A stretch of 64,000 bases of DNA. Source: Eukaryota sp. TZLM1-RC. Its lineage: Eukaryota > Protista > Metamonada: BaSk clade. A program made the translations under genes and the position numbers. This document shows, one piece after another, positions 6,071-49,796 of the stretch. Position 1 is the first letter of the stretch, and the number at the start of each line of letters is the position of its first letter. A model generated the notes under the pieces. The model ran no database searches. It worked only from the letters and a program-made list of their open reading frames with translations, and had not been told where the DNA came from. The DNA is taken from positions 124,001 to 188,000 of the forward strand of contig JAUPSS010000006.1 in assembly GCA_040285825.1 (NCBI GenBank). Direction: 5' to 3'.

Positions 6071-7223
6071 ATCGGAATTTTCTGAATTTTTGTAACCAAG
6101 TTTGGGAAATCAGATGAACAAAGCAAGGATATATCATTTATTTTTACATTGCTATTGATTCAACAATTTAAGAAAAAGCCAATTAAGAAAAACAGCCAGC
6201 CTGTAGTTTTCAAGAGACAACAAGTGACATTGTGTGGGTTTTTCGGTAATCTGTATAGAAAAAAGTTCTAATCATAACTGAAAAATGATAGCAAAATTAT
6301 CATGTTGTGTCCTTGATGCCAATTAACAAAAAATTTGAATATATGTCTCATTCAATTTTTTCACTTTCTTGATGATTCGTTTGATTAAGGATAAAGATGT
6401 CTTGTTTTTTGCACATATAAGTGAATTTCATTTGTATAAAATCCTTTTGAAAAATCCTTTTATTTAATTTTTTATTTAGTTTATATAGTTTTTTATCTTG
6501 AAAAAGTTATATGCATCAGTGGAGAAAATTCATCAACAATTCTTTTAAACAAAAACAGTTTCATAATCCTGATGAACTCACAATTAGAATTATATTGACC
6601 ACCACAAACCACACTATTTCAGTTCAAATTACTGTGGAGAAAGTGATTTATGTCGCGTTATTACACTCAAAAAAGTGGTGTATTTATTAAGTTGAAGTTT
6701 TAATGTTTGAAAAATACATTTACTTTTGGTACTAAAAAACGAAAAAAGTTTTGAACTGAAACTGAAAGCCTTCTTGGAACTCGTGATCAAGATTTGTAAC
6801 TTTTTCCTTGGAATATTTCGATTTTTTTGTAGAAATTCATTGAAAAACAGTTTCAACACATATATCTGAAATATACAAATATATACAACTTGTTATTTGT
6901 ACAACAACCACAACACATCAGTATGAAAATCTCCATCTAATCTAGGTAGTTCATCATCTACATCAATGAAAAATTAACTAATCAAAGGTCATTGGTATAA
7001 GATGATGATGTCTTCATTCAGTATGCGTTGCTAAAATGTTGAGTTGACGGGGCACCACTATGAACTCCTCATTGTAACCATTGATGGTGATCTAAAGCCA
7101 CAATGTTTGTTAACTGGAAAAACCATTCCTTTATATCAAAATCAATCATTCTTTCTTCATTTCAATACCAACTTCCATTAAACACACTTCAACATACCTA
7201 TTTTAGAATCACTCCCAACTACA

Positions 7224-31005: not shown

Positions 31006-32355
31006 TTACTCTACAATAAACAATCTGTGATTTGCCCAGTACATGTTGAAAACAGGATAATAAGAATCATCATCTAATCTAGGTAGTTCACCATTTATAT
31101 CAATATAACCTGAACCAAGCTCCTTCAAATTAATGGTGTAATTAACTAAATCAACAGTGATTTCAATTACATCACCTTGTTTCCATTGGGTACGGGTTCC
31201 AGAGGTATTGAGGGGTTGACCATTACAATGACAACCATAGACATCAGAGCGATTGAACCTAGAAGAGTCAAACTTCTTCCCAGCAATGACACCAATAACA
31301 AGATTACTATCACGACCTTTATATCTAACCCTCCATTTATGAACACTACCATGCTTCAAGGGTTTATCTCCTCTAATTGGTTGGTCACAAACAAAAAAAG
31401 GATAAACACGACTTTCAGCCACCAAACCATTATCAGAAACAACAACCAAATCATGCTTATATTCCTTGGAAAAAACCACACCACCAAAAGATTGAGCAAC
31501 ATTACTGGTGGTTTTGGGTTCACCAAACTTAGTGGAATCAACAACATTCTTGATTTTTTTAGCAATTTCGAGGAATTTACCCTCAATTCTAGAAATATTA
31601 TCTTTTGCATCAGAAAAACAGCCTTTGATCTCATTCTTTAAACAAGGAGCAGTTTGGTTGAGGGTAACAGGGTTTCCAGAAAAAAAGACGTCAGTGGAGC
31701 TTGGAACCTTGCAAGAGTCAATGCAAGATTTGAGGGATTCTAGGCAATCGCCGATCGATCGGGAGAGTTGAGATGTGGCTTCTTTGGCTACTTCCTTGGC
31801 TTGGCAAAGGCATTGTTCAAGGTCGTTGTTAATGGTGGTAATGGTGGTGGTGTAGGAATCAAGAGCTTCATCGAGAGGCAGCATATCGCCATGGGAGGAG
31901 TGCCCGTCCACAAGACAGCAGTTAACGCAGACAGGGATTGAGCAATGCTGACAAAAGTACTCCAAGGGCTTTGTTTTGTGCTTCGTACACTTCTTGGGGA
32001 GAAGGGGACTTTCATTGAGGGGTACAACAGTGTGGGATCGAAACATGCCGAATTTGTGGACCCCTTCTGAACAACGTCGGCACAATGATGAAGCACATTC
32101 GTGGCATCCGACAGAGGCAGGAGCTTCGTCACACCCCTCACATCGAGGAGGAGAGAGGGACATGTGTTCAATGGCCTTCCTTAGACTAATGTTCACATGC
32201 AAACTCTTCCTCTCTGCAGGATGACGGCATTCGGGGCAGGTTTGGCTCTTCTCAAACCATGGACGGAGACATTTGTTAAGGCAAAAGCTATGTCCACAGG
32301 TCAATGAGCAAGGTTCTTGCATGGTATCGTGACAAATCGAGCATGTGAGGATCAT
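31006..32355 (-). CDS. TRIM-like E3 ligase: RING - B-box1 - B-box2 - helical linker - SPRY/B30.2-like domain, copy 1
   Basis: RING CSIC..CGHSFC..C..CPEC; B-boxes CEGC..CHEC..LC..C...H...H and CTKH..FCQHC..VCVNC...H..H; SPRY-like HKWRV..IGV..GDVIEITVDL..YYP. Confidence 0.85.
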   Translation of the reverse strand: MILTCSICHDTMQEPCSLTCGHSFCLNKCLRPWFEKSQTCPECRHPAERKSLHVNISLRKAIEHMSLSPPRCEGCDEAPASVGCHECASSLCRRCSEGVHKFGMFRSHTVVPLNESPLLPKKCTKHKTKPLEYFCQHCSIPVCVNCCLVDGHSSHGDMLPLDEALDSYTTTITTINNDLEQCLCQAKEVAKEATSQLSRSIGDCLESLKSCIDSCKVPSSTDVFFSGNPVTLNQTAPCLKNEIKGCFSDAKDNISRIEGKFLEIAKKIKNVVDSTKFGEPKTTSNVAQSFGGVVFSKEYKHDLVVVSDNGLVAESRVYPFFVCDQPIRGDKPLKHGSVHKWRVRYKGRDSNLVIGVIAGKKFDSSRFNRSDVYGCHCNGQPLNTSGTRTQWKQGDVIEITVDLVNYTINLKELGSGYIDINGELPRLDDDSYYPVFNMYWANHRLFIVE

Positions 32356-32578
32356 GGGAAGAAGAGAAGTGTTTGGTGCTGGTTTGTTACAATTTTAGAA
32401 AGGTTGTTTGACTTCAAAATGACCAATTGACTGCCATTTTATTTCTGAAACACTATATTGGGAATTGGTAAGACCCTTTTGTCATTCAGCAATGCAGATA
32501 ACTTCTCCTTGACTGTTGTTGTAGTTAAGCATTGTGAATTTCGTCCTATACGATGTTGCTGCGATACTCTTAAATTGT

Positions 32579-32950
32579 CAAGGTTCTTGCATGGTTTCGT
32601 GGCAAATGGAGCATGTGAGGATCATGGGGGGTAGAGAAGTGTTTGGTGCTGTTTTGTTGCAATTTTAGAAAGGTTGATTGACTTCAAAATGTCCAATTGA
32701 CTGCTATATTAATTCTGAAACAATTATTTGGGAATTGGCAAGGCCCTTTTGTCATTCAGCAATGCAGAAAACTTCTCCTTGACTGTTGTTATGGTCAAGC
32801 ATTCGGAATTTCCTGTTATACAATGTTGCTGCGATATTCTTAAATTGTTATTGTGTCAAAATAGTAGCACAACTAGTGGGATCAAGTAACGCTTCCACTA
32901 GGTTCTGTTGATGGTGTTCATGTTGAAGTACATTGTCTGGGTGTATAGTT
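32579..32950 (-). pseudogene. Tandem partial duplication of the TRIM promoter and first ~15 codons
   Basis: 32579-32848 repeats 32309-32578 and resembles the 47730-48000 paralog; homology with 48000-48098 continues to ~32950. Confidence 0.8.
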
Positions 32951-34309
32951 TCCGTCTAACATTAATTCAATTTTGTATCTGATTTGAACTTTTTTTGATG
33001 CTGAATGAAAAGCAGGGCGAGAAATATTCTAGTAATTTTTGTAATTTTATTATATTTGAGTTTGAAACTTTTGATACTAATTTTACTTGGTCTTGTCCAT
33101 TCACATCCGTTTGCTATTAATTGCTTCCTGAAGTTAGTTTTATATCATTGTTTGATTATCTTGTTCAAAAACGTTTATTTGGCGGAGCATTTACCGAATA
33201 AATCACACTTAATTTCGGCAATTCATCTGCCTTATTTTTATTATTATTATTATATATTCCAATGAGATCACTGCCCAGACAAAACAACACAATCATGGAT
33301 GTTTCTCCAACATATATTGATATATTTAGGAGCATAAGGGTTACATAATGGTTGAATTCAGCAAATACATTAATCACGAGTTAATAATAATTTACATCAA
33401 AAATAGACAAAAATAGGGATGAGTTGCATGAGTACATCAAAGTTCTTAGTCACACACAATTTCAGTGTTTTAATTTCAGTTTTTCAACTAAGAGAATTTG
33501 GTTTTGCTCCAAATGCCAATAAATTTTATAACAATTATATTAATTTTAAAATTTTCCTCACGTAACCCAAATGAACACGTGTTCATGAACACGGGGACAT
33601 TGAAAATTTTAAGTCGAGTGTTGTGATTTCTCAATTTTGGGAATGAAAAATCAAATAAAGGTAACAAAAAACAACAGTGGGAAATATTTTTCACAAGACT
33701 GTTTTTGGGAAAATTTGCACTAACAAAAACAAGTGTAACTAGCTTTTAACACTAGTGAATCGTGGCTGATCAGTATAGTCCTCCTCAATGACAGTGAACC
33801 ACGTCCATGAACCCTGCTCCATACGTTGAAACCTCATAACAAGACTGTCATCTGAAATACACCAATTGAGCTTGTTGTCCGGTTTAGGCATATATTGCCA
33901 CATTGTACAACAAACGGCATCAATTATGTCACTTGTAGAGGTTTCCGCAGCACGTTATCTGACAGCAGTCTTTCCTTTCTACGAAAATGATAAACCAACA
34001 GGCGCATGATTCAAGTGAAAATCCACTCCAGCCAAAGGTCAATCAATTAGTAACTATTTGGCCACATGTCCAGAGATAAGGGGATTTATAAATCGACATC
34101 AATGGTTTAACTCTACAATGAGCAGAGTTTCATCTTGATAACTTTATTATTTTTCTGTACATACATTTGCTAATGGGAGCTCGTTCTGAAGTTATCATTC
34201 GAAGAAGAATCCTTACTGTGGTCAGGACACAAGTATGTTTTTTTTAATTTGCATGTTCATTTGTTCTGTTTCTACAATACTTACAGTAATGGAATACAAT
34301 ACAGGAAAA

Positions 34310-34400
34310 CCAAGAAATTGCATTTCTGCATCCACCAATAAAAGCACACGAAGTAAGAATAGAAGCCTCCATCCAACCTAAACCGCCATAATGTGAACAT
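34310..34400 (-). mobile_element. Internal CRE-like fragment
   Basis: Matches 61060-61140 (HYGGLGW..ASILTSCAFIGGCRNA). Confidence 0.7.
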
Positions 34401-35040
34401 AATTTATACAATTTTTTGAAATCTAAAAGTATTCTTTGGAAAACAATTCTTCAATTGATTGGGTAAATGAAAAAGAACCAAAGGAAGGAGTTTCAGCTAG
34501 ACTGACTCGCCCAAATTTGTTAGAATATAAAAACAGGCGATTTTAAACTGTTTTTACAACGAGTTTCGGGTTGGATAAATCAATCATCAATCAATCTCCA
34601 TCAATTAAAGACGTTTCGAACAAATATGTGGCGAAATGTGTCGGAATATGTCGGCTTATGCAATAAATCAAGATTGAAAACGATAAACAAACCATTTTAT
34701 AGTAATTCACCATTAGTTGGAGGTACAATCATTGTGAGAAATTTTCAAAGTACTTTTGCCCACACAAGGGTAACAGTTGTGAAATCCATAATATTTTGGT
34801 TGGAATCATCAAATAGTTTATAAAAATCACCACATAAATCACCCTTAATCATTGAAGAAAAGTTGGTGATTCTGATCATTAGGGTTGAATTGACAAGTGA
34901 TAAACTGGAAATATTTGGTAAATAATTGCTGGTTTTATTGTTAAAATATAAAGAAATTGAAAGAACAAATTTATCAATTGAATAAAACAATATTTAAAAA
35001 AACGAAATAATTCAAATTAAACCTAAAAAAGTCAAGTTTA

Positions 35041-36936
35041 TTAGTCATCCCTTCCAGAAACCCAAACTATTGAATTTGCTAGCAATAAATGACCATCTGT
35101 GGAGCTTTTCCATCCACCAAAAGGACCATCAGTACTATAACCATCTGAAACAAAATCTACCACTCTACTTTTGTTATATTCACTCTTCAACACCAAAGGA
35201 TTTCCATTCTTCAAGGTAGCAACTGTTTGAAATTCAGGGTTGATGGAAGTGTATTTTGCACCAAGCCTACAAGAAAAAGAGTTTACTGATTTCATAATTA
35301 AATCATTCTGGTTAGAGTTACCAAAATCAATGAAAGAGCCAAATGATTTCAAATCACTCAAACCCTTGAATGCTCCATATTTAAAGTCACCCTTGATGCG
35401 ACCTCCACTACTACTAAACAATACCAAACCCTTGCCAGCTTCTACTATTTGTTCTAGTAGTGTGGCTTGAATGTTTAAACCATTAGTATTGTACAAAACA
35501 ACATCAAAATTATCAATATTGTTTAAATTTGGTTCATCAGTAGAAGTAATTTGTACCTCAAGATTAGGCCAATTTTGCCTAAATCCTTTGTGAATTTTTT
35601 GGGTGATGTCATTATGAAATCTTGAATAAGCCCACAAACAAACCCTAATTAATGGTAAATTTGATTGAATTATTTGGTTTTTAAATTGCAATTCACTTCT
35701 TAATTCTTGAATTTGAGTGGTTAATTGGCTATTTAATTCATCTTTCTCACCTAATTGTTGATTTAAATTGGAATTATTTCTGGTTAATTCTTCAATTTGT
35801 TGATCTTTTTCACTAATAACATTTTCAATGTGTTCAGTTAATAAAGGAACAACAATTTCATTATTAAACTTACTAATTACCAAAACAAACTTTTCAATTG
35901 AATTAAATGGTTTAATAAATAATTCTTGAATTTCTTGTGGATTAAATAATTTTAAATCAAAACCATTTAAAATTTCACTAAATTGATCAATATTCCAATC
36001 AAAACAATTTAAATTCAAACAATTTAATAACCAAATGCATATTTTTTTGTTTTTTTAATTCTTTAAATACTTTAAAAGAATCAAAACTTAATTCCATAAC
36101 ATTTTCTTCAAGGTTTTGATTAATTAAAAAGATGATAAAAATGCTAAATGAATTTGCTTTTCATTAGCCATTTTCAAAACCCAAAAGAACCATTTAGGTG
36201 GAATTTGTGAATTATTTTTGAAATATTTAATAGAAAATTCAAACAAAAATTCATTAAATTGACTTTGCTGATAAAAAGAAAGAAAAACATCTTCATAAAG
36301 TTCTTCAATCTTCAATTCCTCAGAGTCAATCATACCAAGCAACTTTTCCACTTGACAATCAGACAAATTGTTCTTCTTCCAAGACCAAACCACAGACCTC
36401 ACCAACCACAAAGATTCAGCTTGCTGCTCTACCAAGCAAGAAAGAGACGCAAAAGCAAGAGAGAGTGGTTCCAAAATTGTTGAGTTAATGTAGGAACCAA
36501 TCTTTATTAAGAGTTTTTGGTCTTCATTAGCATCAGCATTGACTACAGCGGGAAGGAGCCATTCAGGGGATTGAAAGTGATCAGTTATGACCTGATCACA
36601 AGCCTCATTAATTGAATCTACCTCGAAAAACGAAGAGAGGTACCTGAAATGATAGAACGTTTCAGGAGTGAATTCGATGCTTCCTCCATAAAAGTAATCG
36701 ATGAAGATCTGGAGGGAGGAAGAAGAGACGGGAAGATGGTCGTAATCGCTTGTAGGGTCGTTAGAGTCTACCCAGTTGAGAGTGAAGAGCTTGTGATAGT
36801 ACTTGGAGTAGAGTACCAAAAGAGCACGATGAACAGCAAACTCTTCACCGTTGAATCGAAGGGTATAGTCACGGAGATGAGGGCTGTTACGGAGGTCTGT
36901 GAGGATCTGTGAAGGTGGGAGAGATACGTTGAGCAT
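35041..36936 (-). CDS. BTB - helical/coiled-coil - class I glutamine amidotransferase-like domain protein; apparent compensating homopolymer frameshifts at ~36030-36130
   Basis: BTB motif DYTLRFNGEEFAVHRALLVLYSKYY; C-domain FDVVLY..IVEAGKGLVLF..NGNPLV..TDGHLLLANSIVWV. The two ORFs share one frame and are separated by 3 TAA codons between T and A runs. Confidence 0.7.
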
Positions 36937-36989
36937 TGTATGAGTGAAGTTGGTTTGGATTTGAATCGAGAAATTTGTAGAAACTAAAT

Positions 36990-37430
36990 ATGTTTGCAAA
37001 AATTCTGCTGCTCGATGTGTGTATTCCGCTGAATCGCTGTTATCTAGCGCCGAAAAACAGAAGATAAAGAAATATGAAGAACCTTTGGCTCAGTGAGGTA
37101 GAGTGGAACATGTGAAATATCAGTTTGTGCCGTTTGCAATTTCTCTTTTTGTCAATATTGGACCTTTAGGCTTGCACTTTTTTGAAAATTTTAAAAAAGT
37201 GTTACTGAATAGGTCTGGTAAAACAATGAACTCCACTTTCTGGATAAATAGAATTGTTTCTTGCATTTTCAAGTCTATTCCAACAATGATTTCAAAGGCA
37301 CTTTTAGCTATTGGTGTAGAATATGAACGTAATGCTGTGAGTAGGTTCGGTAATAGTGACGCTTGTTTGGAGGATATTGAATTCTAGATGGGTTTTTTTA
37401 TCTCAACAAATATTCCAATTTTAAAAAAAA
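36990..37430 (+). mobile_element. Severely 5'-truncated CRE-like copy
   Basis: Closely similar to 44395-44810 (reverse complement); motifs AEKQKIKKYEEPL, FVPFAISLF, FWINRIV. Confidence 0.85.
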
Positions 37431-38142
37431 TAAAGCAACACATTGAACATCGTCTAATCAATTAGTTTGGTTAATTTTTATACAATTTGTCATACTTATA
37501 GGAAGAACACATTCAAAAATCAACAACAACACCATCACAATAATGAAGTTCTTTTTTGATACTGGATATAAGTCGCATGCCTGAAAGGCTGGTTTGGTTG
37601 ATTAGTGAAACCATATTCGCAAGGAATTGAATAATTGGATTCAGGGATGAATTACCACTACTGGAATTGGTCAATGCAAGTAGTAAACCCTAAAGCAATC
37701 ACACAAAGTAACATTCAAGTTTAACAAAATATATGTTTAGAATGACACGCTTTGATAATAAACAACAATAGACAAAAAAGAGAGGGAGATAGTGTATATG
37801 TAAAGTTTGTTGATGGAAATCCACAGTCTGTCCATTATTCTTTTATTTTTTCCTATTCAACAAAAGGTTAACTACACAAATGAGGTCAGCATTACCACCT
37901 TTTTTAAACTTCATGTCAAGCTAAAGTTTTTACCATTTTCCATTCACTTGTTTAGTGATTTTGAATTATATTTATATATTCTATTGATATTTATTGAACA
38001 TGTTGATGAAGCTAAGAGCAACTGAGAGTAGAGAAGCTTAAGCAAGACTGTGAATATACTATGTACTAATTCAATTTAGTTGAAAAGGTTCATTAACAGA
38101 TACTCAAACAAGTCATAATCACACACAAATACATCAAATGCA

Positions 38143-41100
38143 ATGAGCACATCCACCCTCTTCTCTCTCAGTTATGAGGAGCTTCTCTCCCGTCTCAAAT
38201 CCCTTTCTGATCATGCTTCTACTCTCAAGTCCAAGTTTGAAGTTGAGAACATTTCCACCTCAGACATTGAAATCATTGACATGGACAACATCCAGTCTCA
38301 ACTCACTGACTTTCTCTCTTCTTCCCACAACATACCCACCAAAACTCTCACTAATCCTACTCACCCACCACCTTTCGTCACTTCTCTCAAAACCCAGCTA
38401 GATTCACTCGTCCCCTCATCCACTTCTTCTCTCCTTACTGTATCGAAAAGTCTATTGCAAAACTACTTGGCCAACCTTCAACACTATCATCACCTCCTCT
38501 CACATCGTCTCTCCCTCCTCTCCACGTGTTCCATGTCTCCTTCTTTACGCAAACAGTCTGAGTTGATTTTAACGGATTCCCTGCACGAGAATATTTCACT
38601 TCAATCTACCACCACTGATCTAATTTCATCATTGAACACCAACCCTAACCCTAACACTAACCCTAATCCTAACCTTCTGCCCTCTCTACTCCTTGCTTGT
38701 GAAATTTTAAATGAAGACTTTGTTGGTAAAAGGTTTACAAGATTTATTAAACCATCTGTAGAAGTAGTTAAACATCTAGACTGTAACTCTGTAGGGCTGA
38801 GGGGTGAGGTGCTACTAAATCAGGTAACAGTCAAGAACTCATCAATGTTTGAGGATTTTTCGTGGGAGTCGGAATTACACACTTTGTGTCAGGTTTTTGG
38901 TTATAAAGTTGATTTTGACACGTCATCAGATCAAAATGACACGTCATCATTTGATTGTTTGACAGAAGATCAGTTATATTTTGAAATCGAAAAGTTGCTA
39001 CCATTAGTTTTACCGTTTCAGGTATCATTTTTCAATCAAACCGCCAATCAAAGTGAGAATGATGATGAAAATCAGTTTGTGTTGATTGACGGTCATGACG
39101 TTGATTTTGAACCCTTTTTTGACCCTATTGAACCCATTTTGATTGGAAATCCTATCAATTTCAACTTGTATTCTGATGATAACTCCCCAAATTCTTTCAT
39201 AAATTCACCCTCAATTGTTTTTAAAAGTGAATTAAAAACTTTAAAATGTAGTCATTATTCAGTGTTAATGAATAGATTTAGAAAAACAACAACACTGTCA
39301 CGCAATGTTTCACTCAAATCTGTACTGAGCTCTTCTCTAATCTCTTCTAGTCAGCTTCCTAGTGGGGATCAGGAGAGTTGTCAAAACATCACTGACAAGC
39401 AGAATCGCAAATTTTTCTGTTTTTTGACACTTCGACATTTGAGTTTGATCTCTACTCGAGTCAACATGATCTCTATTCTAAATATTATGATATATTACAA
39501 AATATTCTGCTCTTCAATCGTCAATTCGTCTCCGTGTGAATACAAACTGGTCAACATTTCTGATGAATTTCTAATCAACTTGTACAAAAAGTTGAACCCA
39601 AATTCAAAGGAACCACCAGATGTGAATTTGTTACATAATCTTGTCCCGGTCAAATACATGGTTCAAAATTCGACCAATCATTACGTGATTTTCAAGGAAA
39701 GTTTTGAGCTTTTGGAGAAGCTTGAAAAAAGAATTGTTGATGTTGCTTTTAATTCTTATTATTCCAATTTTGATGATATTGTGGATGACGTCACCCAGTC
39801 ACATTCAACGGAAACTGATGCGTTGGCAGTGTTTTCAGGATGTTACAAAGCCGAAGCTCTACATTTAGAATCTTTATTCAAGTTTATTTCACTCTTAATC
39901 ACACTAATTTCCCATTCAGATCACTCCAACAAGGTCAAAATCACACGTCAAGTCGTGCAAAGTCTTGATCATTTCTTCTCTGATTCTTTTAAAATTAATT
40001 CTTTAAATTGCTATTCTCTTTCTATTATCATTAATGAGTTGATTAGCTCTTCTATTGCAACGGTATTTGGTGGTGCTATAGTTGATTATACCTATCAAAA
40101 TTCTTCAAAAGTTCCTAATTTTGACCTCTTGCCGACCGCCATGTTGCCAAAAATAGAAGGGGTCAATATCCCTAATGTTTTTGAGTTTCCGGTCAATCAG
40201 TTTCTACAATCAAGCACAATCAATCAAATTATTGAACTTTTTCCATCAATCAATTCAGTGGTTTCCTTTTTCACTTTAACCCACAGGCCGACCAGTAACT
40301 CAGCTTTTTTAGCATTAAAAGCTGGTTCTTTGCAATGTGTGTATTCCTCGATTAAATCTGGAATTAATGATTTTACCAATTTATTAAAGCAATCTAGCAA
40401 CCCTGACCCCAACCCTAATTCTGATGTTTTACATTTAATTTCGGACTTTTTATCACCATGTTTTGAATCAGTCAATTTCAAAAATGAATTAAATTTATTA
40501 ATAAACGATCCTGCGTTAGAAACTATCGACATTTCCATGTTAAAATCGACAGCTGACACGTCATTGTTCGACAATGATTGTGCAATCAGAGTCTGTTTGA
40601 ATCTTGTTGACTTTTTTCAATGTTATGACCGACTATTAGACCTTTATTTAGGCAACCGATTGTCCATTCTGGCTCATTCCCATCAATTAAAATATGTCGG
40701 CAAAATATTTGAACCAGACACAGTCAAGTTGATTCCAATTGACTCTCCAAAATTTCATGATCAGCCGGAGCCTATTGAGTCTGAGGATTTTTCTTTGTTA
40801 TTGGACCCTCCAGATGAGGAAACTATCCAAGTTGAGTGGTTTTCTCTTGCTTATACAGAAGTTTCGTTTTCACTTGAACCAGAATTATTGTCAAAAGGGA
40901 TCAGAAAGGTAGTCACTGGGAGCGCTATTCGAAATATTCATCGTGTCACCAGGTTAGAATTTGGCAGAAATTGCCTATTGAATTCCATCATATTGCAAAA
41001 CGCCCCTCTGGTGAATTTTCTAACACACAAGCTTCAAAACTTCAAAAAGAGCTCACAAGGAGATCAACAAACACGTAAGGAAAGATTACTTCAAATGGCC

Positions 41101-43836
41101 AATTTAGCTCCTCTATTCTCTTCTTTTTTGACATTTCGAGTGGATTTGCGTCGTTCTCTGAGGACTAGGTTTGTCCGAATGTGCTCAAATACAGAAACTT
41201 CTATCCTACCCCACACACCGGAGGCGGTCGCGTCATCAGGTCAAAATTCACCATTTTCTGTAACTTTCTCGGAAGGTTTGGTGGCTGAAATGGGAGATTC
41301 TTATGCCAAAATTATGGTTAATGAAGCTTTGCCCTTGTTTACTAGGTACGCAATAATACTAACTACTCAAATAGGATTTGATGGGATTGGTAATTTATGG
41401 GAGGAGCTCAAAAATCAGCTCAAAAATGAATATGGTGACGTGTTGGTGACGTCATCTGATTCTGGGTTGGAGATCAAGAATCCAATTATTTTACCTACAG
41501 TGTTTGAAATTTTGAAATTTTCACGTGAAGAAACCACCAGCTCAGCATTAGATCAACTTTCTCTAATTTTCAACACTCTAAATTCCACAATTTCGTGCAT
41601 TCAACATGAAATTCTCTCAATTTACCTCAATTCAAACACAAATTCCCTCGCCAACATGCTCACTGATTCAGATTTTGTTGAAGTATTATTTCGTGATTTA
41701 CTATTTTTTATTAAATCTACTTTAAGTAAGGATGGAGATTTGACTGAAAACATTTGCTTAACTGATGATTTGAAACGTTATAGACTTTTGGCGTTATTGA
41801 GGACGGTGCTGACGTCATCAAAACAACGAAAAGGAAAGAAGGAACCAATCAAAATGATGGAGAGGTTATTAACCCAGTCATTTCATCAATCAAACCACGT
41901 TTTTGATTACGTTACGGGATCCTATTTTGATAGATGGAGAATTTTTAATTTTTTCTATTCCCAAAAAGGACCATTACGAGCGTTGACTTCTGCAGAATTC
42001 ACAGCAATTAGTCTTAAAAGTCAAGAATTTTCAAATGATTTGGATGAATTAAATTCTTATTTTGAAGTTTATGTCAGTTGGTTCATATCCAAAACATTGA
42101 AAAATTTAATAAACGACCATGTTGACTTTGATGATGCAACTCTTTTTTCCAATCAAAAAGAGTTGTTATCACGTGCCTTTTTGAGCTCTTTATTGAGCGA
42201 GTACAAGACGAAATTAGACCGAGTATTGGAGAATAAGGTTTCAACTCAAAATTCCCCAAATTCTGTTGTTCCAGTGGCTAATTTCCAGCAGGAGCTCATA
42301 AATAGTTCAAAATTCTTGACTATTGAAGACTTTCACGTGCTTGAATACGCAACTCAGATTTCTGGACTCAATTCAATCAAAAATTTGATTGATCCTGCTG
42401 ATCCTCAGTCAAGATTAGTCGTTGTTCCTGAAAATCTGGTAACTGAATTGATAAATCACCTATCAGAAAACGTAAGTGAATGGAAGTCTTCAGAAGTCAC
42501 TCAACTTTATGATCTGAACAGGTCATTAGTCACAAATTTTGAACAGCGCGAGTTACAGTTGCAAAATCAACAAAAGTCATTATCAAATTTGATTGATACG
42601 GTCAATAATCAGGTTGATGTTTTGGCAAGTACTAAATTGACTGACACTACTTTTGAATTACTACTTGAAAATGACCTTCTTCGACATCAATATAGGCAAC
42701 TAGAACAATCAGTGACGTCACTTGAGAAGAAAATCAGAGAAAAAGTCTTGAAAAGTCTTGGTGATGAAATCGAAGGTTATAAAGAATCGATTGAAAAGTT
42801 GACTTTTAAATTAAAGGAAGCCAAAGTAGAATCACAAGATAAACTAGAAAAAGCTCTTTTGGATACTCGAAGTGAAGCTTTGAAATCATTAGCCTCTTCT
42901 CAAACAATTACCAATCAATCAATCAAAAATCATGTCATGAAAACTGCTGGGGATGCTGAAAAATTATCAAATTTGACTGAGGAAGTTCAGTCATTGAAGA
43001 AAACTATTGAAAAATTAAAGTTTTTTCACCGGTTACATCAGTCGAGCCACAGTAACCAATTGACTCAGGAAATCAACTCTCTGCGTCAGGAAAACGAAAT
43101 TTTAAAAGAAGAGCTCGCCACTAGCTCAAATAGAGCAACATCAAGAGAAGACATGCTGAGATCAAAAATTTCGGATTTGCAAAAACAACTTTCTTTATCA
43201 AAAACTGAAGTTGAATCAATTTCACGAATGTCAAAACAAGCAGAAGACTTAAAGGAAAAATTCCTACGACAGCGAATCATTGCTACCAGAAAAGTACAAG
43301 ATTTAGAAAAAACACTTGCTCAAACAAGAGGTGGATACGATTCTGCTGATATTGCTGTTTTGAAGAAGGAATTGAGTGAGTTGAGGGAGGAAAAGCATAA
43401 GAGGCAGTTACAAGATACCAGAGCTTCTCCTGCTTCTAGTTCAAAATTAGAAAAAGAAGTTACGAGACTCAGAAGAATTTTGGAGAATGAGCGTTCTGTC
43501 AAACGTGATTTGATGGTTAAAATTGAAGAATTAAAAAGCTCAACCGAGTATTCACACGATAATTGTATTTCAAAGAACAGCTATGATGCTTTGCTTGAAG
43601 AAAACAAGACATTGCGAAAAGCACTTTCCTCCTTAGATCACAGTAGGACTCCTTTTGCTTCTTCTCCGATTTCTGAAACACCTTCAGGTGAAGTCAATTC
43701 TAGAGGTTCAATTGATAGTCCTTACATTGCTGCAACTCCTTATTTGGCAAGGTCTTCTCCAGTAGCGAGTTCGCCTTTTTCTAGGTCAAAGAGTAAGTCG
43801 AGACCAAATACGGCAACCAGGAAGGGGTTTGATTAA
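38143..43836 (+). CDS. Large (1897 aa) helical protein with C-terminal coiled coil; resembles CCDC162/DUF4549 family
   Basis: Uninterrupted 5.7-kb ORF with long heptad region. Segments LTDTTFELLLENDLLR and LENERSVKRDLMVKIEEL recall CCDC162 (from memory, unverified). Confidence 0.75.
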   Translation: MSTSTLFSLSYEELLSRLKSLSDHASTLKSKFEVENISTSDIEIIDMDNIQSQLTDFLSSSHNIPTKTLTNPTHPPPFVTSLKTQLDSLVPSSTSSLLTVSKSLLQNYLANLQHYHHLLSHRLSLLSTCSMSPSLRKQSELILTDSLHENISLQSTTTDLISSLNTNPNPNTNPNPNLLPSLLLACEILNEDFVGKRFTRFIKPSVEVVKHLDCNSVGLRGEVLLNQVTVKNSSMFEDFSWESELHTLCQVFGYKVDFDTSSDQNDTSSFDCLTEDQLYFEIEKLLPLVLPFQVSFFNQTANQSENDDENQFVLIDGHDVDFEPFFDPIEPILIGNPINFNLYSDDNSPNSFINSPSIVFKSELKTLKCSHYSVLMNRFRKTTTLSRNVSLKSVLSSSLISSSQLPSGDQESCQNITDKQNRKFFCFLTLRHLSLISTRVNMISILNIMIYYKIFCSSIVNSSPCEYKLVNISDEFLINLYKKLNPNSKEPPDVNLLHNLVPVKYMVQNSTNHYVIFKESFELLEKLEKRIVDVAFNSYYSNFDDIVDDVTQSHSTETDALAVFSGCYKAEALHLESLFKFISLLITLISHSDHSNKVKITRQVVQSLDHFFSDSFKINSLNCYSLSIIINELISSSIATVFGGAIVDYTYQNSSKVPNFDLLPTAMLPKIEGVNIPNVFEFPVNQFLQSSTINQIIELFPSINSVVSFFTLTHRPTSNSAFLALKAGSLQCVYSSIKSGINDFTNLLKQSSNPDPNPNSDVLHLISDFLSPCFESVNFKNELNLLINDPALETIDISMLKSTADTSLFDNDCAIRVCLNLVDFFQCYDRLLDLYLGNRLSILAHSHQLKYVGKIFEPDTVKLIPIDSPKFHDQPEPIESEDFSLLLDPPDEETIQVEWFSLAYTEVSFSLEPELLSKGIRKVVTGSAIRNIHRVTRLEFGRNCLLNSIILQNAPLVNFLTHKLQNFKKSSQGDQQTRKERLLQMANLAPLFSSFLTFRVDLRRSLRTRFVRMCSNTETSILPHTPEAVASSGQNSPFSVTFSEGLVAEMGDSYAKIMVNEALPLFTRYAIILTTQIGFDGIGNLWEELKNQLKNEYGDVLVTSSDSGLEIKNPIILPTVFEILKFSREETTSSALDQLSLIFNTLNSTISCIQHEILSIYLNSNTNSLANMLTDSDFVEVLFRDLLFFIKSTLSKDGDLTENICLTDDLKRYRLLALLRTVLTSSKQRKGKKEPIKMMERLLTQSFHQSNHVFDYVTGSYFDRWRIFNFFYSQKGPLRALTSAEFTAISLKSQEFSNDLDELNSYFEVYVSWFISKTLKNLINDHVDFDDATLFSNQKELLSRAFLSSLLSEYKTKLDRVLENKVSTQNSPNSVVPVANFQQELINSSKFLTIEDFHVLEYATQISGLNSIKNLIDPADPQSRLVVVPENLVTELINHLSENVSEWKSSEVTQLYDLNRSLVTNFEQRELQLQNQQKSLSNLIDTVNNQVDVLASTKLTDTTFELLLENDLLRHQYRQLEQSVTSLEKKIREKVLKSLGDEIEGYKESIEKLTFKLKEAKVESQDKLEKALLDTRSEALKSLASSQTITNQSIKNHVMKTAGDAEKLSNLTEEVQSLKKTIEKLKFFHRLHQSSHSNQLTQEINSLRQENEILKEELATSSNRATSREDMLRSKISDLQKQLSLSKTEVESISRMSKQAEDLKEKFLRQRIIATRKVQDLEKTLAQTRGGYDSADIAVLKKELSELREEKHKRQLQDTRASPASSSKLEKEVTRLRRILENERSVKRDLMVKIEELKSSTEYSHDNCISKNSYDALLEENKTLRKALSSLDHSRTPFASSPISETPSGEVNSRGSIDSPYIAATPYLARSSPVASSPFSRSKSKSRPNTATRKGFD
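38641..38675 (+). repeat. Telomere-like (AACCCT)n tract inside CDS, encoding NPNPNTNPNPN
   Basis: Sequence aaccctaaccctaacactaaccctaatcctaacct. Confidence 0.85.
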
Positions 43837-44389
43837 CATTTGATTGATTGGGTTTTGTCGGGTTATTAAAGTAAGTCTGGTCTTAAATAAATTGTATTTT
43901 TATATTGTGTTTTGCGAATATTTGAAGATTTTTTGTTTCTTTTATTTCATCAAAATTAAATTCTGGTGAAAAGGGAACGACGATTGCCAAAAAATAAATC
44001 ATTAATAAATAAATTTTGCTGAAACTTCTGAATTCTGTTGTCATTAAAATAGAATAATAATGAGTGAGTTTTGAGTAAATGACAATTCATTTTACAAAGC
44101 TTTTTTGCAAAGAATGATTTCTTTCCTTTGCACAACACAGATCCAATCGTTCAATACTCTTCTTCTTATAAAAGGTTTAGAGATGAAGATATAAGATTGA
44201 CGTATTTCGTTTTTTATGAAAGCTTATACCGAGTGCGAACCCGTAAACCTTTATTAACCTACTCACCACTTCTGCTGATAGGATGAGATTATGAAGGAAA
44301 TGAATGTTTGCGAAACACCCAAAAATAGTTTGGAGCTATTGATTTTTGTATCAGCTGTTATTCTTAATTAGTGATTTTTTTAACTGTAA

Positions 44390-45230
44390 TATTTATTGAG
44401 AAAAAAAACTATCTATAATTCAATATCCTCCTAACAAGCTTCATTATTACTAAACCTACTCACAGCATAACGTTTATATTCTACACCAATAGCTAAAAGC
44501 GACTTTGAAATCATTGTTGGAATAGACTTGAAAATGCAAAACACAATTCTATTTAACCAGAAAGTGGACTTCATTGTTTTTCCAGACCTATTCAGTAACA
44601 CCTTTTTGAAGTTTTCAAAAAGGTGCAACCCTGAAGGTCCAATATTGCCAAAAAGAAAAATTGCAAACAGCACAAACTGATATTTCACATGTTCCACTCT
44701 ACCTAACTATGCCAAAGGTTCTTCATATTTTTTTATCTTCTTTTTTTCGGCGTTAGATAACGGCGAATCAGCGGAATACACTAAACGAGTAGCAGAATTT
44801 TTGCAAACATCAACTGAGACAACATCTACAACATTGAGAACACCATCGATCCCTGAAGCTACTAAATCTGCCCTTCTTTGACCAAAGGAATCATCAGTTT
44901 GATATGAAGACAGCTTACGTACTAGTGGCTCAATAAATGCCTCTAAATTGAAACTTTTGCACATGGCATATAATTGATCACGAACTGAGTCATGAACAAT
45001 TGAGCGATAAGTTATAAAATACTTACAGTTTAAAATATGGGAAAGCGTAACAACACTCTTGCAGCGACAAATTAAATCATTTGGTAAAGAAGAAAACATC
45101 TCATTCTCATTGCAGCGGTCCATTGGTGATCATTGAGTAGAAGGCTATAAATGTTGGCAATTTGGGAGATTAGGCAACTTGAGCAACTGTCTTCAAGATC
45201 AATCAAAAAGTATTATTAAAAAGTTTTATA
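44390..45230 (-). mobile_element. 5'-truncated CRE-like copy
   Basis: Motifs CRC-x7-HILNC, YRSIVHDSVRDQL, EPLV, RRAD..DVVSVD and AEKKKIKKY. Confidence 0.85.
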
Positions 45231-46403
45231 ACATTTGTTATTTTCAAGATTTCTTTAATTTATTTCAAAATACAAAGTATTTGCTGAACATTTTTATCAA
45301 AAAGCATGTTAAATAATTCGGAAAATGGTAATTGACATTGTTGAATAATGTAGCTTATGATTAAGTTGTTCTAAATCAACGGTTTAGTTAAAATAAAACG
45401 AAATAATGAGATTATAGTTGTTTTTTCATTTTTCGGTAACTTGCATGATAAAGGTAATGAGTAATGAATTTATGATAAAGCCTACCAAGACCGTTTCTCG
45501 ATTGACAAAATTATGCAACCTCCAATGCATGGACAGTTGAAAATTGAATGAAGATCACCATCCAATACTTTTAATGTCCCCTGCGCCTTCTCTGAAAGCA
45601 TCAGTTAGGCACATGTAGTGGAACTACACTAATTAGTAAAAGGTAAAAAGTGCATTAATGTAGAGCAATCATTCCCAAGAAATAGAAAACACTTCCCCTC
45701 TACATCATGGTATAATACACTTTTTCAATAACCAAACCTCAGAAGCTACATCTTCAAGGATACATTCATCCCTTACCAATTGATTGTCCACTTCTTCGTA
45801 GATTCTTTGACGAACTTCATCTTCTGAAACCAAAGATGTGCTTCTCGACAATTCACTTGCTTCATGTGCTTTCTCCTCATCAATCGAAGTCAAACTCTAT
45901 CCACAAGAGGGGCAGTTCTTCAACTGAAGACTAACTTTCCATTCCTCTCCACCAACATTTCACATCGTTGTTTTGAATGTACTGTCACCATTTGTGTTGC
46001 TGAAACTACTCTGGACAAAGCTTTGGTCAAGTTTGGCTACTCTGTAACTCATCCATCATTGCAATGGCAAATCGTCTATTCAAGCTTATTACATTTATTA
46101 ATATTGCACTCAGTGAACTGTTGAATCGCTTTTTATGTTTTATAAGGTTGATAAATTTTTGTACAAAGTGGGTAATAAATGTACCTTTATTTCAGTTAAA
46201 ATTGGTGTAAAGTTGATGTTTAAACAAACTAATTCAAAACTTTTATTTATTTTAATATCATTGATCAATTTACAATTCTACTGAAAATTGAACAAGTTTA
46301 AGGTCAAGGCTTTGATTAGTAAGATCATTTTGTTGGAATTGGTGAAAATTGAAAATAAACAATGACTTTACAAAAAATGATTTATAAAACAAATCAAACA
46401 CAA

Positions 46404-47774
46404 TTACTCCACAATATACAATCTGTGATCATGCCGAACAATTACATTTTGTGTACTTGAGTAGCCGAACGCAAAATAAGGATAATAAAAATCTCCATCT
46501 AATCTAGGTAGTTCACCATTTAAATCAATATAACCTGAACCAACCTCCTTCAAATTAATGGTGTAATTAACTAAATCAACAGTGATTTCAATTACATCAC
46601 CTTGTTTCCATTGGGAAGTGGTTCCAGAGGTGTTGAAGGGTTCACCACTACCATTATGACAACCATAGACATCAGAGTGATTGAACCTAGAAGAGTCAAA
46701 CTTTTTCCCAGCAATAACACCAATAGCAAAACCACCATCATCACCTTGATAACGAACCCTCCATTTATGAACACTACCATGCTTCAAGGGTTTATCTCCT
46801 CTAATTTGTTGGTAACCACCACCACCACCACTTTCAGCCACCAAACCATTATCAGAAACAAAAACCTTATCATGCTTAAATTCCTTGGAAAAAACCACAC
46901 CACCAAAAGATTGAGCAACATTACTGGTGGTTTTGGGTTCACCAAACTTAGTGGAATCAACAACATTCATGATTATTTTAGCAATTTCGAGGAATTTACC
47001 CTCAATTCTAGAAATATTATCTTTTGCATCAGAAAAACAGCCTTTGATCTCATTCTTTAAACAAGGAGCAGTTTGGTTGAGGGTAACAGGGTTTCCAGAA
47101 AAAAAGACGTCAGTGGAGCTTGGAACCTTGCAAGAGTCAATGCAAGATTTGAGGGATTCTAGGCAATCGCCGATCGATCGGGAGAGTTGAGATGTGGCTT
47201 CACTGGCTACTTCTTTGGCTTGGCAAAGGCATTGTTCAAGGTCGTTGTTAATGGTGGTAATGGTGGTGGTGTAGGAATCAAGAGCTTCATCGAGAGGGAG
47301 CATATCGCCATGGGAGGAGTGCCCGTCCACAAGACAGCAGTTAACACAAACAGGGATTGAGCACTGCTGACAAAAGTACTCCAAGGGCTTTGTTTTGTGC
47401 TTGGTACACTTCTTGGGGAGAAGGGGACTTTCATGCAGGGGTACAACAGTGTGGGATCGAAACACACCCATTGAGTGGACAATACCTGTACAACTTTGAC
47501 ATAGAGATGATGTACAATCGTGACAGACGACGGCGGCAGGAGCTTCTTCACACCGCTCGCATCGAGGAGGAGAGAGGGACATGTGTTCAATGGCCTCTCT
47601 CAGACTAATGTTCACATGCAAACTCTTTCTCTCGGCAGGACGACGGCATTCAGGACAAGTTTGGCTCTTCTCAAACCATGGACGGAGACATTTGTTAAGA
47701 CAAAAGCTATGTCCACAGGTCAATGAGCAAGGTTCATGCATAGTTTCGTGGCAAATGGAGCATGTGAGGATCAT
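46404..47774 (-). CDS. TRIM-like E3 ligase: RING - B-box1 - B-box2 - helical linker - SPRY/B30.2-like domain, copy 2
   Basis: Same architecture as 31006-32355; central region almost identical, SPRY loops and B-box1 divergent. Confidence 0.85.
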   Translation of the reverse strand: MILTCSICHETMHEPCSLTCGHSFCLNKCLRPWFEKSQTCPECRRPAERKSLHVNISLREAIEHMSLSPPRCERCEEAPAAVVCHDCTSSLCQSCTGIVHSMGVFRSHTVVPLHESPLLPKKCTKHKTKPLEYFCQQCSIPVCVNCCLVDGHSSHGDMLPLDEALDSYTTTITTINNDLEQCLCQAKEVASEATSQLSRSIGDCLESLKSCIDSCKVPSSTDVFFSGNPVTLNQTAPCLKNEIKGCFSDAKDNISRIEGKFLEIAKIIMNVVDSTKFGEPKTTSNVAQSFGGVVFSKEFKHDKVFVSDNGLVAESGGGGGYQQIRGDKPLKHGSVHKWRVRYQGDDGGFAIGVIAGKKFDSSRFNHSDVYGCHNGSGEPFNTSGTTSQWKQGDVIEITVDLVNYTINLKEVGSGYIDLNGELPRLDGDFYYPYFAFGYSSTQNVIVRHDHRLYIVE

Positions 47775-49796
47775 GGGGAGAAGGGAAGTGTTTGGTGCTG
47801 TTTTGTTACAGTTTTAGAAAGGTTGCTTGACTTCAAAAGACCAATTGACTGCTATTTTAATTCTGGAACAATTGAATGGGAATTGGCAAGGCCCTTTTGT
47901 CATTCAGCAATGCAGAAGACTTCTCCTTGACTGTTGTTATAGTCCAGCATTGTGAATTTCGTCCTATACAATGTTGCTGCGATATTCTTAAATTGCTATT
48001 GTGTCAAAATAGTAGCACAACTAGTGGGATCAAGTAACGCTTCCACTAGGTTCTGTTGATGGTGTTCATGTTGATTTCATTGTATGGGTGTATAGTTTAA
48101 AAATTGCAATATTTATTGCAAAATTTAATCTTATTGATGACTCAATAGTTTCACAAGATTGTCTTCAACAACACAACAACAATCAATCAAAGCAACCTCA
48201 TAAGTTTTAAATTGTTTTTATAACAAGTGGTGCTTTAAGTTGATCAAACCATCACTTCTCTTTATTATATCAATTTTGATTATAATATGGCAATTCTGCC
48301 ACAAGAAGTGTTGTGGAGGAACCATGATTTTGCATAAACAGTCCTGCTCAAAACAATTTATTACTGAAAACGACTGAATTCTACAAGAAAAACGGAATCT
48401 TTCAGACAAACATCATCAACAACTCACTATTGAGGTTTCCATTTTTGGACGAAATTTTCCCTGTGGTTATCGGGATTGAAGATGATATCTTGTCCAATTA
48501 GATTTGGCAAAATGAACTGGAAGTCATTACACTGAAACTTGTTATCACGACTAGAACATGTCGACACGTCATAAATTGCCACGTCACCATTACCAAGCAA
48601 AACGTTGACAGAATCAAAAAACCTCATGATAAGTGATATTGCTGCTTCTGGAAAACCAAACTAATATTGAGTCCTGCATAGTATTGCGATTTAAAAGTCC
48701 AAAAAAGGCATAGTCTCCAAATCAAGGAAAATTAAGTGATTGAGGAGGAGGATGAGCTAGAATCGCTAGAGAAAGAGACAGCTTCAGATGGAGAAGAAAT
48801 GTGTATCTGTGAGTGTTCACTTGAGGGTATAAGTGTTTATAAAGCGTTGCAGAAAGATCACAAAGTCGGAAAAGTGAGTCCAATTCAGATGCAGAGGGAA
48901 GGGTTCTTGAACCAAATAGAAAATTGACCACCAGGTGTTGTAGAAAGATGAAGGATTTCTGAAGATGATAAAAGAAACACAACAACAGCAGAATTTCATT
49001 GAAAAGGAGAAGACTCGCAGGTGATTAACACAGCATGATTCATTATTGGAGGGTGTGCTTCTTGTCTTATTGGATTTCTTATTATGCTCAAATTTGAGGA
49101 TCATTACCTTTTTCGATGAGTCTTCCATACTTCTATACCACCAAGACTGTTGTTAGGTCATGCACTAAAGGTGCGTTTGGGTTTTGCATTGTAAAATGAA
49201 TTAAACACATTGAATTAATGACAAGCAATGATGCAGGTCTGGAATTTGCTGATGGCATTTGTTTGAACAATTGATGTGTCCTAATAAACAAAGTTGCTTC
49301 TACAATTACAACAAATTTGAAGCAAGATTTATAAAAAAGTAGATGTAGGATCAGGTTCGGACTGCAGATGAGATGACATAAATGAAAGAATCAGGAAAAG
49401 ATCGAGTACTGAGTGAGAAACCTTGACAAAAAAACCACATCTAAATAGAATCGAAAAGTTTGGTTCTTTTAGAAAAGCTGAATGGAGTTTGTGATGTCTG
49501 CATGGAAAGAGTAACAAAATAAAAACGACACGTCAACCGTGATTTTGGTTGTCAGCATGATACACGTCATGAAACGTCATTGTGAAATTAGAGAGACTCT
49601 TCAGTTATCTACAATTAGTTAAAAAATATTAGTTATTAAAAGTTAAAGTAAAATATGCTGCTTTAAAACAAAGGGACTAAAAGAAACTACAAAAACACCC
49701 ATACACTGCACATATACAAAGAACGATAATAAGGATAAAAGGTGAAATAAAGATAAATATAACGGGGCTAAACCAAACCCAAAGTTTAACCCAAAA

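Follow-up and report, generated by a model that had tools for sequence, protein, structure and literature searches.

RBCC-SPRY ligases, in which a RING finger, B-boxes and a coiled coil (RBCC) precede a SPRY domain, are a mainstay of animal intrinsic immunity and are treated in the literature as an animal invention. The tripartite motif (TRIM) has been termed metazoan-specific (Sardiello 2008, PMC2533329), and outside animals only the TRIM37-like subfamily with a MATH domain has been found, including in excavates (Marin 2012, PMC3503706); both sources agree with a preliminary description of the DNA studied here, in which this architecture was said to be regarded as mainly animal. The present analysis concerns two genes of this architecture, W1 and W2, in a stretch of 64,000 nucleotides (hereafter the window; contig JAUPSS010000006.1 of assembly GCA_040285825.1, positions 124,001 to 188,000) from Skoliomonas litria TZLM1-RC. 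This metamonad flagellate is a haloalkaliphilic anaerobe that lives freely and feeds on bacteria (PMC11603281). On balance, and with moderate confidence, we regard them as members of a multigene family that is specific to this lineage and encodes TRIM-like E3 ubiquitin ligases, in which a conserved chassis is joined to a diversifying SPRY domain, with genetic conflict as the favoured context. SPRY, B-box and ubiquitin go unmentioned in the S. litria genome paper (PMC11316075), and a literature search found no published description of an RBCC-SPRY family of Skoliomonas.

The class IV animal TRIMs (TRIM5alpha, TRIM21, TRIM25 and TRIM72) are likewise laid out from a RING through B-box(es) and a helical region to a SPRY-fold domain. 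The RING/B-box part of the Skoliomonas proteins is similar in sequence to TRIM72, TRIM25 and TRIM21, their SPRY fold matches the PRYSPRY structures of TRIM7, TRIM65, TRIM67 and MID2, and positive selection is centred on the SPRY domain in TRIM5alpha (PMC2657112) as it is in the Skoliomonas family. The latter differs in that its host is a metamonad flagellate rather than an animal, and in that its SPRY domain is a separate lineage-restricted subfamily, which scores below the Pfam cut-off and is without Pfam PRY; the helical region of the Skoliomonas proteins, of about 125 residues, is a putative coiled coil. In its evolutionary behaviour the family appears most similar to the fish finTRIMs and the primate TRIM5 cluster (PMC2657112). 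The teleost finTRIMs (ftr) likewise form a gene cluster of the RBCC-B30.2 type that has expanded recently and has kept its N-terminal half conserved; about 16-17 of their sites are selected in the M1a/M2a comparison, mostly in variable loops of the C-terminal domain, and recombination occurs within that domain (PMC2657112). The Skoliomonas family, however, is much smaller, with nine SPRY-bearing copies on the studied contig, and belongs to a different eukaryotic supergroup. The TRIM37-like 'subfamily A' (RING, B-box, coiled coil, MATH), the sole TRIM group reported outside animals (PMC3503706), has a C-terminal MATH in place of the SPRY and is a conserved low-copy gene rather than a hypervariable cluster; its occurrence outside animals implies an old eukaryotic RBCC chassis that fusions could have drawn upon. 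In the SPSB SOCS-box proteins and in zebrafish NLR-B30.2 proteins (10.1101/027151), B30.2 is reused in parallel with the Skoliomonas SPRY on its several modules, although the partner modules are other ones. The closest solved structures to the Skoliomonas SPRY are the IUS-SPRY of RanBP9/RanBP10 and the SPRY of HERC1, which share only 19-22% identity with it and come from single-copy, conserved scaffold proteins of other architectures. If the interpretation favoured here is correct, the design of a conserved ligase chassis with hypervariable SPRY loops arose more than once.

Domain composition of W1 and W2

The two open reading frames (ORFs) are stop-free and lie on the minus strand at the positions given in the preliminary description; their products are 85% identical over 459 aligned positions. 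Their features, in window coordinates and residues (aa), are as follows:

31006..32355, minus strand: gene W1, an intact intronless ORF of 449 aa encoding RING, B-box1, B-box2, helical region and SPRY
32227..32343, minus strand: W1 RING finger, aa 5-43 (Pfam and zinc-ligand pattern)
32032..32142, minus strand: W1 B-box1, aa 72-108 (Pfam zf-B_box and consensus spacing), the most divergent part of the N-terminal half
31891..31989, minus strand: W1 B-box2, aa 123-155 (Pfam and zinc spacing)
31501..31875, minus strand: W1 helical (putative coiled-coil) region and linker, aa 161-285 (low-confidence AlphaFold (AF2) model)
31009..31494, minus strand: W1 SPRY domain, aa 288-449 (profile against the PDB, AF2, Foldseek)
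46404..47774, minus strand: gene W2, an intact intronless ORF of 456 aa with the domain order of W1
47646..47762, minus strand: W2 RING finger, aa 5-43 (Pfam)
47451..47561, minus strand: W2 B-box1, aa 72-108 (synonymous-site comparison with W1 and with a distant family member, C652)
47310..47408, minus strand: W2 B-box2, aa 123-155 (Pfam and zinc spacing)
46920..47294, minus strand: W2 helical region and linker, aa 161-285 (low-confidence AF2 model, DNA alignment)
46407..46913, minus strand: W2 SPRY domain, aa 288-456 (profile against the PDB, AF2, Foldseek, site models)

The order that had been proposed, RING, two B-boxes and SPRY, was recovered as RING, B-box1, B-box2, helical region and SPRY, with the RING and B-boxes above their Pfam cut-offs and the SPRY by profile and structural model. 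In both genes the RING matches zf-C3HC4 with 28-30 bits (cut-off 21) and zf-RING_2 with 28-30 bits (cut-off 27.3), W1 scoring 29.9 bits with either model. The W1 RING follows the pattern C-x2-C-x11-C-x-H-x2-C-x3-C-x10-C-x2-C with the eight zinc ligands complete, and an Arg stands immediately behind the last zinc-ligand Cys in 4/4 full-length copies. Two stretches in each gene match zf-B_box with 48-51 bits, and the zinc spacings of a B-box1 followed by a B-box2 are canonical in all copies holding that region (6/6). The N-terminal half recovered TRIM72, TRIM25 and TRIM21 from the PDB at E values of 1e-8 to 1e-6. A full-length AlphaFold model from a 4-sequence alignment had a predicted local distance difference test score (pLDDT) of 45, and was used for tentative helices only and not for fold searches.

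The C-terminal domain scores 17.6 bits with Pfam SPRY (PF00622; cut-off 26.3), in W2 only, there is no match to Pfam PRY (PF13765) in W1 or W2, and a single-sequence search with this domain against PDB sequences yielded nothing significant, the best match being the SPRY of the ryanodine receptor (E=0.21). Despite the sub-cut-off Pfam score, a profile of 40 such domains run against PDB sequences recovered SPRY/B30.2 structures exclusively, led by HERC1 (2.3e-6) and RanBP9 (6.9e-6) and continuing with RanBP10, nematode SPRYSEC, SPSB3, TRIM67, TRIM9 and RNF135, then butyrophilins and more TRIMs. AlphaFold, given a 40-sequence alignment, produced a 14-strand all-beta model of the domain (pLDDT 91, predicted template-modelling score 0.87), for which Foldseek found 344 PDB matches at E<0.001; all listed top matches were SPRY/B30.2 domains, with template-modelling (TM) scores of 0.66-0.72. 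RanBP9/10 came first (E 3.8e-9, TM 0.72), followed by TRIM67, HERC1, DDX1, TRIM7, MID2, ASH2L, TRIM65 and SPSB2, and the alignments cover entire PRYSPRY domains. Because the family profile, the predicted model and Foldseek all give SPRY/B30.2, the C-terminal domain is a genuine but divergent SPRY, in keeping with its initial designation as SPRY-like. A viral structure library returned generic phage SPRY-fold matches only, all weaker than those in the PDB, and thus no sign of a viral origin of the domain.

Family members, gene conversion and selection

Copies were sought by blastn, tblastn and a hidden Markov model (HMM) of the SPRY over the window and four fetched loci (coordinates prefixed with L below), so that the census pertains to one contig and to database representatives. 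The family thus extends beyond the pair originally described, to nine SPRY-bearing copies on this contig and to P0030, a collinear paralogue that is encoded on a different contig and shares 30% identity along its whole length; the SPRY HMM found no additional copies in all six frames of the window and the four loci. Four genes are intact and full-length; besides W1 and W2 they are D120, immediately to the left of the window, and C652, at a distance of about 480 kb. An inverted pair lacks the RING from one shared breakpoint; its members are E48, which is intact (382 aa), and F41, which has a frameshift of 1 nt and was read with X/NNN at that point. G123 is a SPRY-only fragment with an open reading frame. 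In K204 a kinase and coiled-coil gene with one in-frame stop continues into a SPRY 85% identical in DNA to that of the family, and since the likeness begins precisely at the domain border it argues for ongoing domain shuffling; its two pieces were analysed separately. K204 may be either a recent, now broken kinase-SPRY chimera or a sequencing error. A collinear gene in Skoliomonas sp. GEM-RC1 (P0013) implies that the architecture is older than the split of the two Skoliomonas species. The atypical copies are located as follows:

L003:2716-3864, minus strand, and L003:9986-11115, plus strand: RING-less divergent inverted pair, truncated at about nt 184 of the W2 coding sequence (CDS)
L004:8591-10417, at about 204.5-206.4 kb of the contig and shortly beyond the right end of the window: K204, a 390-aa kinase, stop, coiled-coil and SPRY (P0007)

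The RING-less copies begin at a methionine that is internal (M65) in the full-length genes, and the pair resembles RING-less relatives of TRIMs, which may be modulators. Loop 2 of the K204 SPRY carries a QGGN-QGGN tandem insert.

Comparison of W1 and W2 reveals near-identity of the RING, B-box2 and linker, with 4 non-synonymous differences in the RING, 1 in B-box2 and 4 in the helical region, and a divergent B-box1 with 19 such differences in 51 codons, both as previously described. The mosaicism deduced from that contrast is also apparent at synonymous sites, where the proportion of differences (pS) between the two genes is 0.30 in the RING, 0.32 in B-box1, 0.14 in B-box2, 0.012 in the helical region and 0.069 in the SPRY, a 25-fold variation along the gene (B-boxes versus helical region, Fisher P=6e-6). 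The B-box1 of W2 is nearest to that of C652, 480 kb away (pS 0.078), rather than to that of W1, and the helical region is near-identical in W1, W2 and D120, where the DNA alignment places it in one gene-conversion tract. Different gene segments yield conflicting tree topologies; within the SPRY the nearest neighbour switches about every 25 codons, and the final 24 codons of W1 are 98% identical to those of E48, whereas elsewhere the two differ by 20-38%. Judging from these patterns, the helical region is homogenised by gene conversion, and the variability is best read as arising jointly from homogenisation of the chassis, shuffling of segments and selection. Gene conversion, which had been overlooked at the outset, would accordingly shape the pattern as much as selection does.

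The four W1/W2 segment pairs singled out in the preliminary description as variable in the SPRY are all present exactly as quoted, and three of them vary in length as stated, by 3, 1 and 9 residues in segments 1, 3 and 4, respectively. Segment 2 is equally long in W1 and W2 but contains a 4-residue insert in another family member, such that length changes recur in all four loops across the family; a fifth variable segment, W2 residues 363-366, had been missed. The reported (GGT)5 run is real (W2 reads AGT GGT GGT GGT GGT GGT TAC), as is the richness of loops 1-3 in GGT/GAT/AGT/AAT/TGT, which make up 28-53% of their codons as against 21% of the remaining SPRY codons and 12% of the first 287 codons of the gene. 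Codon use also shifts within W1 and W2, the GC content at third positions (GC3) being 0.45-0.64 from RING to B-box2 versus 0.25 in the SPRY (T-ending codons 57%); the remaining ORFs of the window have a GC3 of 0.21-0.40. This shift may reflect GC-biased gene conversion or separate histories of the two halves.

Ratios of non-synonymous to synonymous substitution (dN/dS, or omega) were computed by the Nei-Gojobori method over all copies, the RING value coming from the four full-length ones. The RING (dN/dS 0.06, dS 0.24), B-box1 (0.27, dS 0.69) and B-box2 (0.07) are under purifying selection (0.06-0.27), which, with values of 0.06-0.07 at a dS of 0.24-0.48, has been sustained in the RING and B-box2. 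The ratio is 0.50 in the helical region and 1.14 in the SPRY, where windows at alignment columns 301-355 reach 2 to 8. With loops defined by the AF2 strands, independently of variability, tree-free pairwise comparison of the loops gives dN/dS values of 3.5-6.7 for W1, W2 and D120, the youngest copies, and a one-ratio codon model in IQ-TREE gives 0.5-0.7 for the strands. GY94 site models were written for this analysis, and their M0 likelihood reproduces that of IQ-TREE (-1989.36). In the SPRY, M2a is preferred to M1a (twice the log-likelihood difference 84.8, nominal P=4e-19) with 16% of sites at omega 7.6. The signal is kept with the five intact genes only (53.9), after removal of gap regions (46.4) and in the two halves with their own trees (29.7 and 38.8), and a class of 12-18% of sites at omega 6-9 appears in every sub-analysis. 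In control regions of the same genes it is absent (B-boxes, P=0.57; helical region, P=0.98). Seventeen W2 sites have a posterior above 0.95 for dN/dS>1 (K303, G319, D345, R363, F364, H366, H373, E378, F380, S387, Q391, Y433 and A435-S439); they are located in the four segments noted earlier and in W2 363-366, and 13/17 lie outside AF2 strands. The SPRY segments thus bear the clear non-synonymous excess, mostly in inter-strand loops, that the initial proposal of a hypervariable recognition surface had called for.

Proposed function, origin and alternative explanations

These observations suggest a mechanism in which the conserved RING would recruit an E2 charged with ubiquitin, both B-boxes together with the helical region would provide a conserved and probably oligomerising chassis, and the C-terminal SPRY would bind the target through its inter-strand loops. 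The family would grow by local duplication; segmental gene conversion would keep the chassis uniform and shuffle SPRY segments among copies, including truncated SPRY-only ones, and diversifying selection on loop residues might then cause paralogues to differ in what they recognise. The favoured context is genetic conflict, with proteins of viruses, retroelements, or intracellular or ingested bacteria as the putative targets, and an immune role is a reasonable inference.

Several points weigh against this interpretation. RING ligands 5-6 are spaced atypically, as C-x3-C where x2 is usual, and the coiled coil comes from a low-confidence AF2 model, with helices 161-214 and 232-274 at pLDDT 50-67. 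In three independent pairs the loop dN/dS is only 1.65 (binomial P=0.038) versus 0.67 in strands, and the maximum-likelihood omega of the pooled non-strand sites ranges from 1.18 (F3X4, P=0.47) to 1.94 (F1X4, P=0.002). In IQ-TREE the pooled loops are not significantly different from omega=1 under F3X4 or F and are so under F1X4 only; since the result depends on the codon-frequency model, an omega above 1 is claimed for a class of sites and not for whole loops. Selected sites are only marginally enriched in loops relative to strands (Fisher P=0.08), and the site-model P-values are optimistic, because recombination is present and is known to inflate these likelihood-ratio tests. Several copies are truncated or broken, so that part of the family may be decaying, and the sole tie to parasites is the presence of retroelement genes near three family loci.

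In one alternative the genes encode ordinary substrate-specific E3 ligases for the organism's own proteins, with loop variability arising from relaxed constraint after duplication and from recombination artefacts and not from an arms race. Two of three codon-frequency models put omega for the pooled loops near 1, frequent recombination can produce false M2a positives, and many housekeeping ligases use SPRY, the closest structures here being RanBP9/10 and HERC1 and not immune TRIMs. Relaxed constraint, however, caps omega at 1, and thus accounts neither for the site class at omega 6-9, which has no counterpart in the controls, nor for the tree-free values in the youngest copies, and the repeated length changes in all four loops likewise speak against it. 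The tree-free estimates and null controls are firmer support for selection than the site-model P-values, and we consider this alternative unlikely.

Allorecognition and gamete-recognition loci are also marked by diversifying selection and gene conversion, and the family might accordingly serve mating, self/non-self discrimination between cells or the handling of prey bacteria taken up by the cell, instead of countering viruses or retroelements. S. litria is indeed a free-living bacterivore (PMC11603281), and no virus of this species was encountered in the present analysis. On the other hand, no signal peptide or membrane segment was found at the N-terminus of W1 or W2, where the RING begins at residue 5, and the proteins are therefore predicted to act in the cytosol; as no result obtained here prefers such roles to defence, we hold them to be improbable.

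The origin of the architecture is addressed by a search of 1.84 billion representative proteins with a profile of the four full-length C-terminal domains, which recovered 57 relatives (E<=0.001) and no animal TRIM among them. A source was determined for 30 of the relatives: 25 belong to two Skoliomonas species, and the rest include one Gocevia transcript, one MMETSP transcript and sequences from three assemblies; this SPRY subfamily therefore seems almost confined to Skoliomonas. A bacterial repeat protein among the matches was judged spurious, as were bacterial multi-repeat proteins (e.g. P0022), which align over short stretches only. Word-index searches with W2 and P0030 recovered only weak RING/B-box matches to animal-type TRIMs beyond Skoliomonas and no RBCC-SPRY protein in other non-animals, which given the limits of the method is weak evidence of absence.

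In Skoliomonas proteins the SPRY subfamily is always C-terminal, and its partners comprise RING-B-box-helical, BTB or BTB-BACK, kinase-coiled-coil, RING-kinase, Ras-BTB and, in one protein, MLKL_N-kinase-B-box modules. The last of these, P0025 (S. litria, another contig, 1115 aa), combines an MLKL N-terminal domain (29 bits, cut-off 27), a kinase, a B-box and the SPRY. We know of no animal protein in which SPRY is combined with kinase or MLKL-like domains. The variety of partner modules, together with K204, points to a sensor-like domain moving among effector chassis within the lineage. P0025 joins a necroptosis-type module to the sensor domain of the family in a metamonad. In the sister species BTB-SPRY is the commonest architecture with this subfamily; the BTB gene of the window (36124-36999, minus strand) is without SPRY by HMM.

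True membership of the animal RBCC-SPRY lineage, whether through descent from an early eukaryotic ancestor or by horizontal transfer from an animal, would account for the N-terminal half, whose best full PDB matches are class IV TRIMs (TRIM72 spanning RING and B-box at 1e-8), for the order of B-box1 and B-box2, which is that of animal TRIMs, and for animal TRIMs being next-best in word searches. It is improbable in the light of the near-exclusive occurrence of the SPRY relatives in Skoliomonas with no animal TRIM among them, the undetected PRY and sub-cut-off SPRY in Pfam, the occurrence of the same SPRY behind BTB, kinase and other modules, including the K204 copy that is alike from the domain border onwards, and a codon composition that matches the host genome with no sign of foreign DNA. 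The preliminary description had offered a convergent or ancient origin; the evidence leans to the former, that is, to assembly of the Skoliomonas RBCC-SPRY within the lineage, independently of animal TRIMs, rather than to the latter.

A more far-reaching proposal, which we put forward tentatively and as somewhat doubtful, is that skoliomonads built their own innate recognition system, in which a lineage-specific SPRY sensor was plugged into ligase, BTB, kinase and MLKL-like chassis, diversified by cassette-like conversion between full genes and truncated SPRY-only donors and by positive selection, convergent with TRIM5, finTRIM and NLR-B30.2, and aimed at viruses or retroelements. With the kinase chimera, and with one SPRY subfamily recurring on BTB, kinase and MLKL-like proteins, the system offers a natural experiment in sensor-effector shuffling, and the presence of the family in a deep-branching, free-living metamonad provides a concrete entry point into the largely unexplored immunity of protists.

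Finally, that the copies are decaying duplicates in a repeat-rich region without current function is highly improbable, for although one copy is frameshifted, one a fragment, one a chimera with an in-frame stop and two RING-less, and retroelement genes and other duplicated families lie nearby, five copies retain long intact ORFs, and the RING and B-box2 show the sustained purifying selection described above.

Duplicated flanks and neighbouring loci

By DNA alignment the duplicated unit takes in the gene together with about 222 nt of its 5' flank and a few tens of nt of its 3' flank. Upstream of W1 a further 270-nt unit, made up of the upstream region and the first ~15 codons of W1, is present as a tandem pair that spans window positions 32309-32848; its distal copy places a 15-codon remnant ORF, MILTCSICHETMQEP-stop, ahead of the true W1 start. 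The corresponding features, and a stray SPRY segment, are:

32356..32577, minus strand: W1 upstream region of about 222 nt, conserved with that of W2, the presumed promoter/5' region (DNA alignment)
47775..47996, minus strand: W2 upstream region, counterpart of the conserved one of W1 (DNA alignment)
32579..32848, minus strand: second tandem copy of the 270-nt unit, 89% identical (blastn, DNA alignment)
6923..6967, minus strand: 45-nt SPRY scrap, 91% identical to nt 1246-1290 of the W2 CDS (blastn)

Reverse transcriptase, integrase and zf-CCHC (Gag-like) genes occur within 10 kb of three family loci:

52267-54186 of the window, minus strand: retroelement genes
L003:1-552 and L003:15595-16059: retroelement genes
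L001:7155-7868: retroelement genes

Other duplications are found in the window. An inverted repeat of 413 nt (91%), at 36990-37402 and 44398-44810, flanks an ORF of 1897 aa (38143-43836) that has no Pfam match; its left arm adjoins the start of the BTB gene at 36124-36999, and its right arm is without a matching intact gene. Two RCC1-repeat paralogues, at 9993-12350 (minus strand) and 57394-59771 (plus strand), lie in inverted orientation about 45 kb apart and are 92-93% identical in three blocks; the one on the right falls into two ORFs and may be broken.

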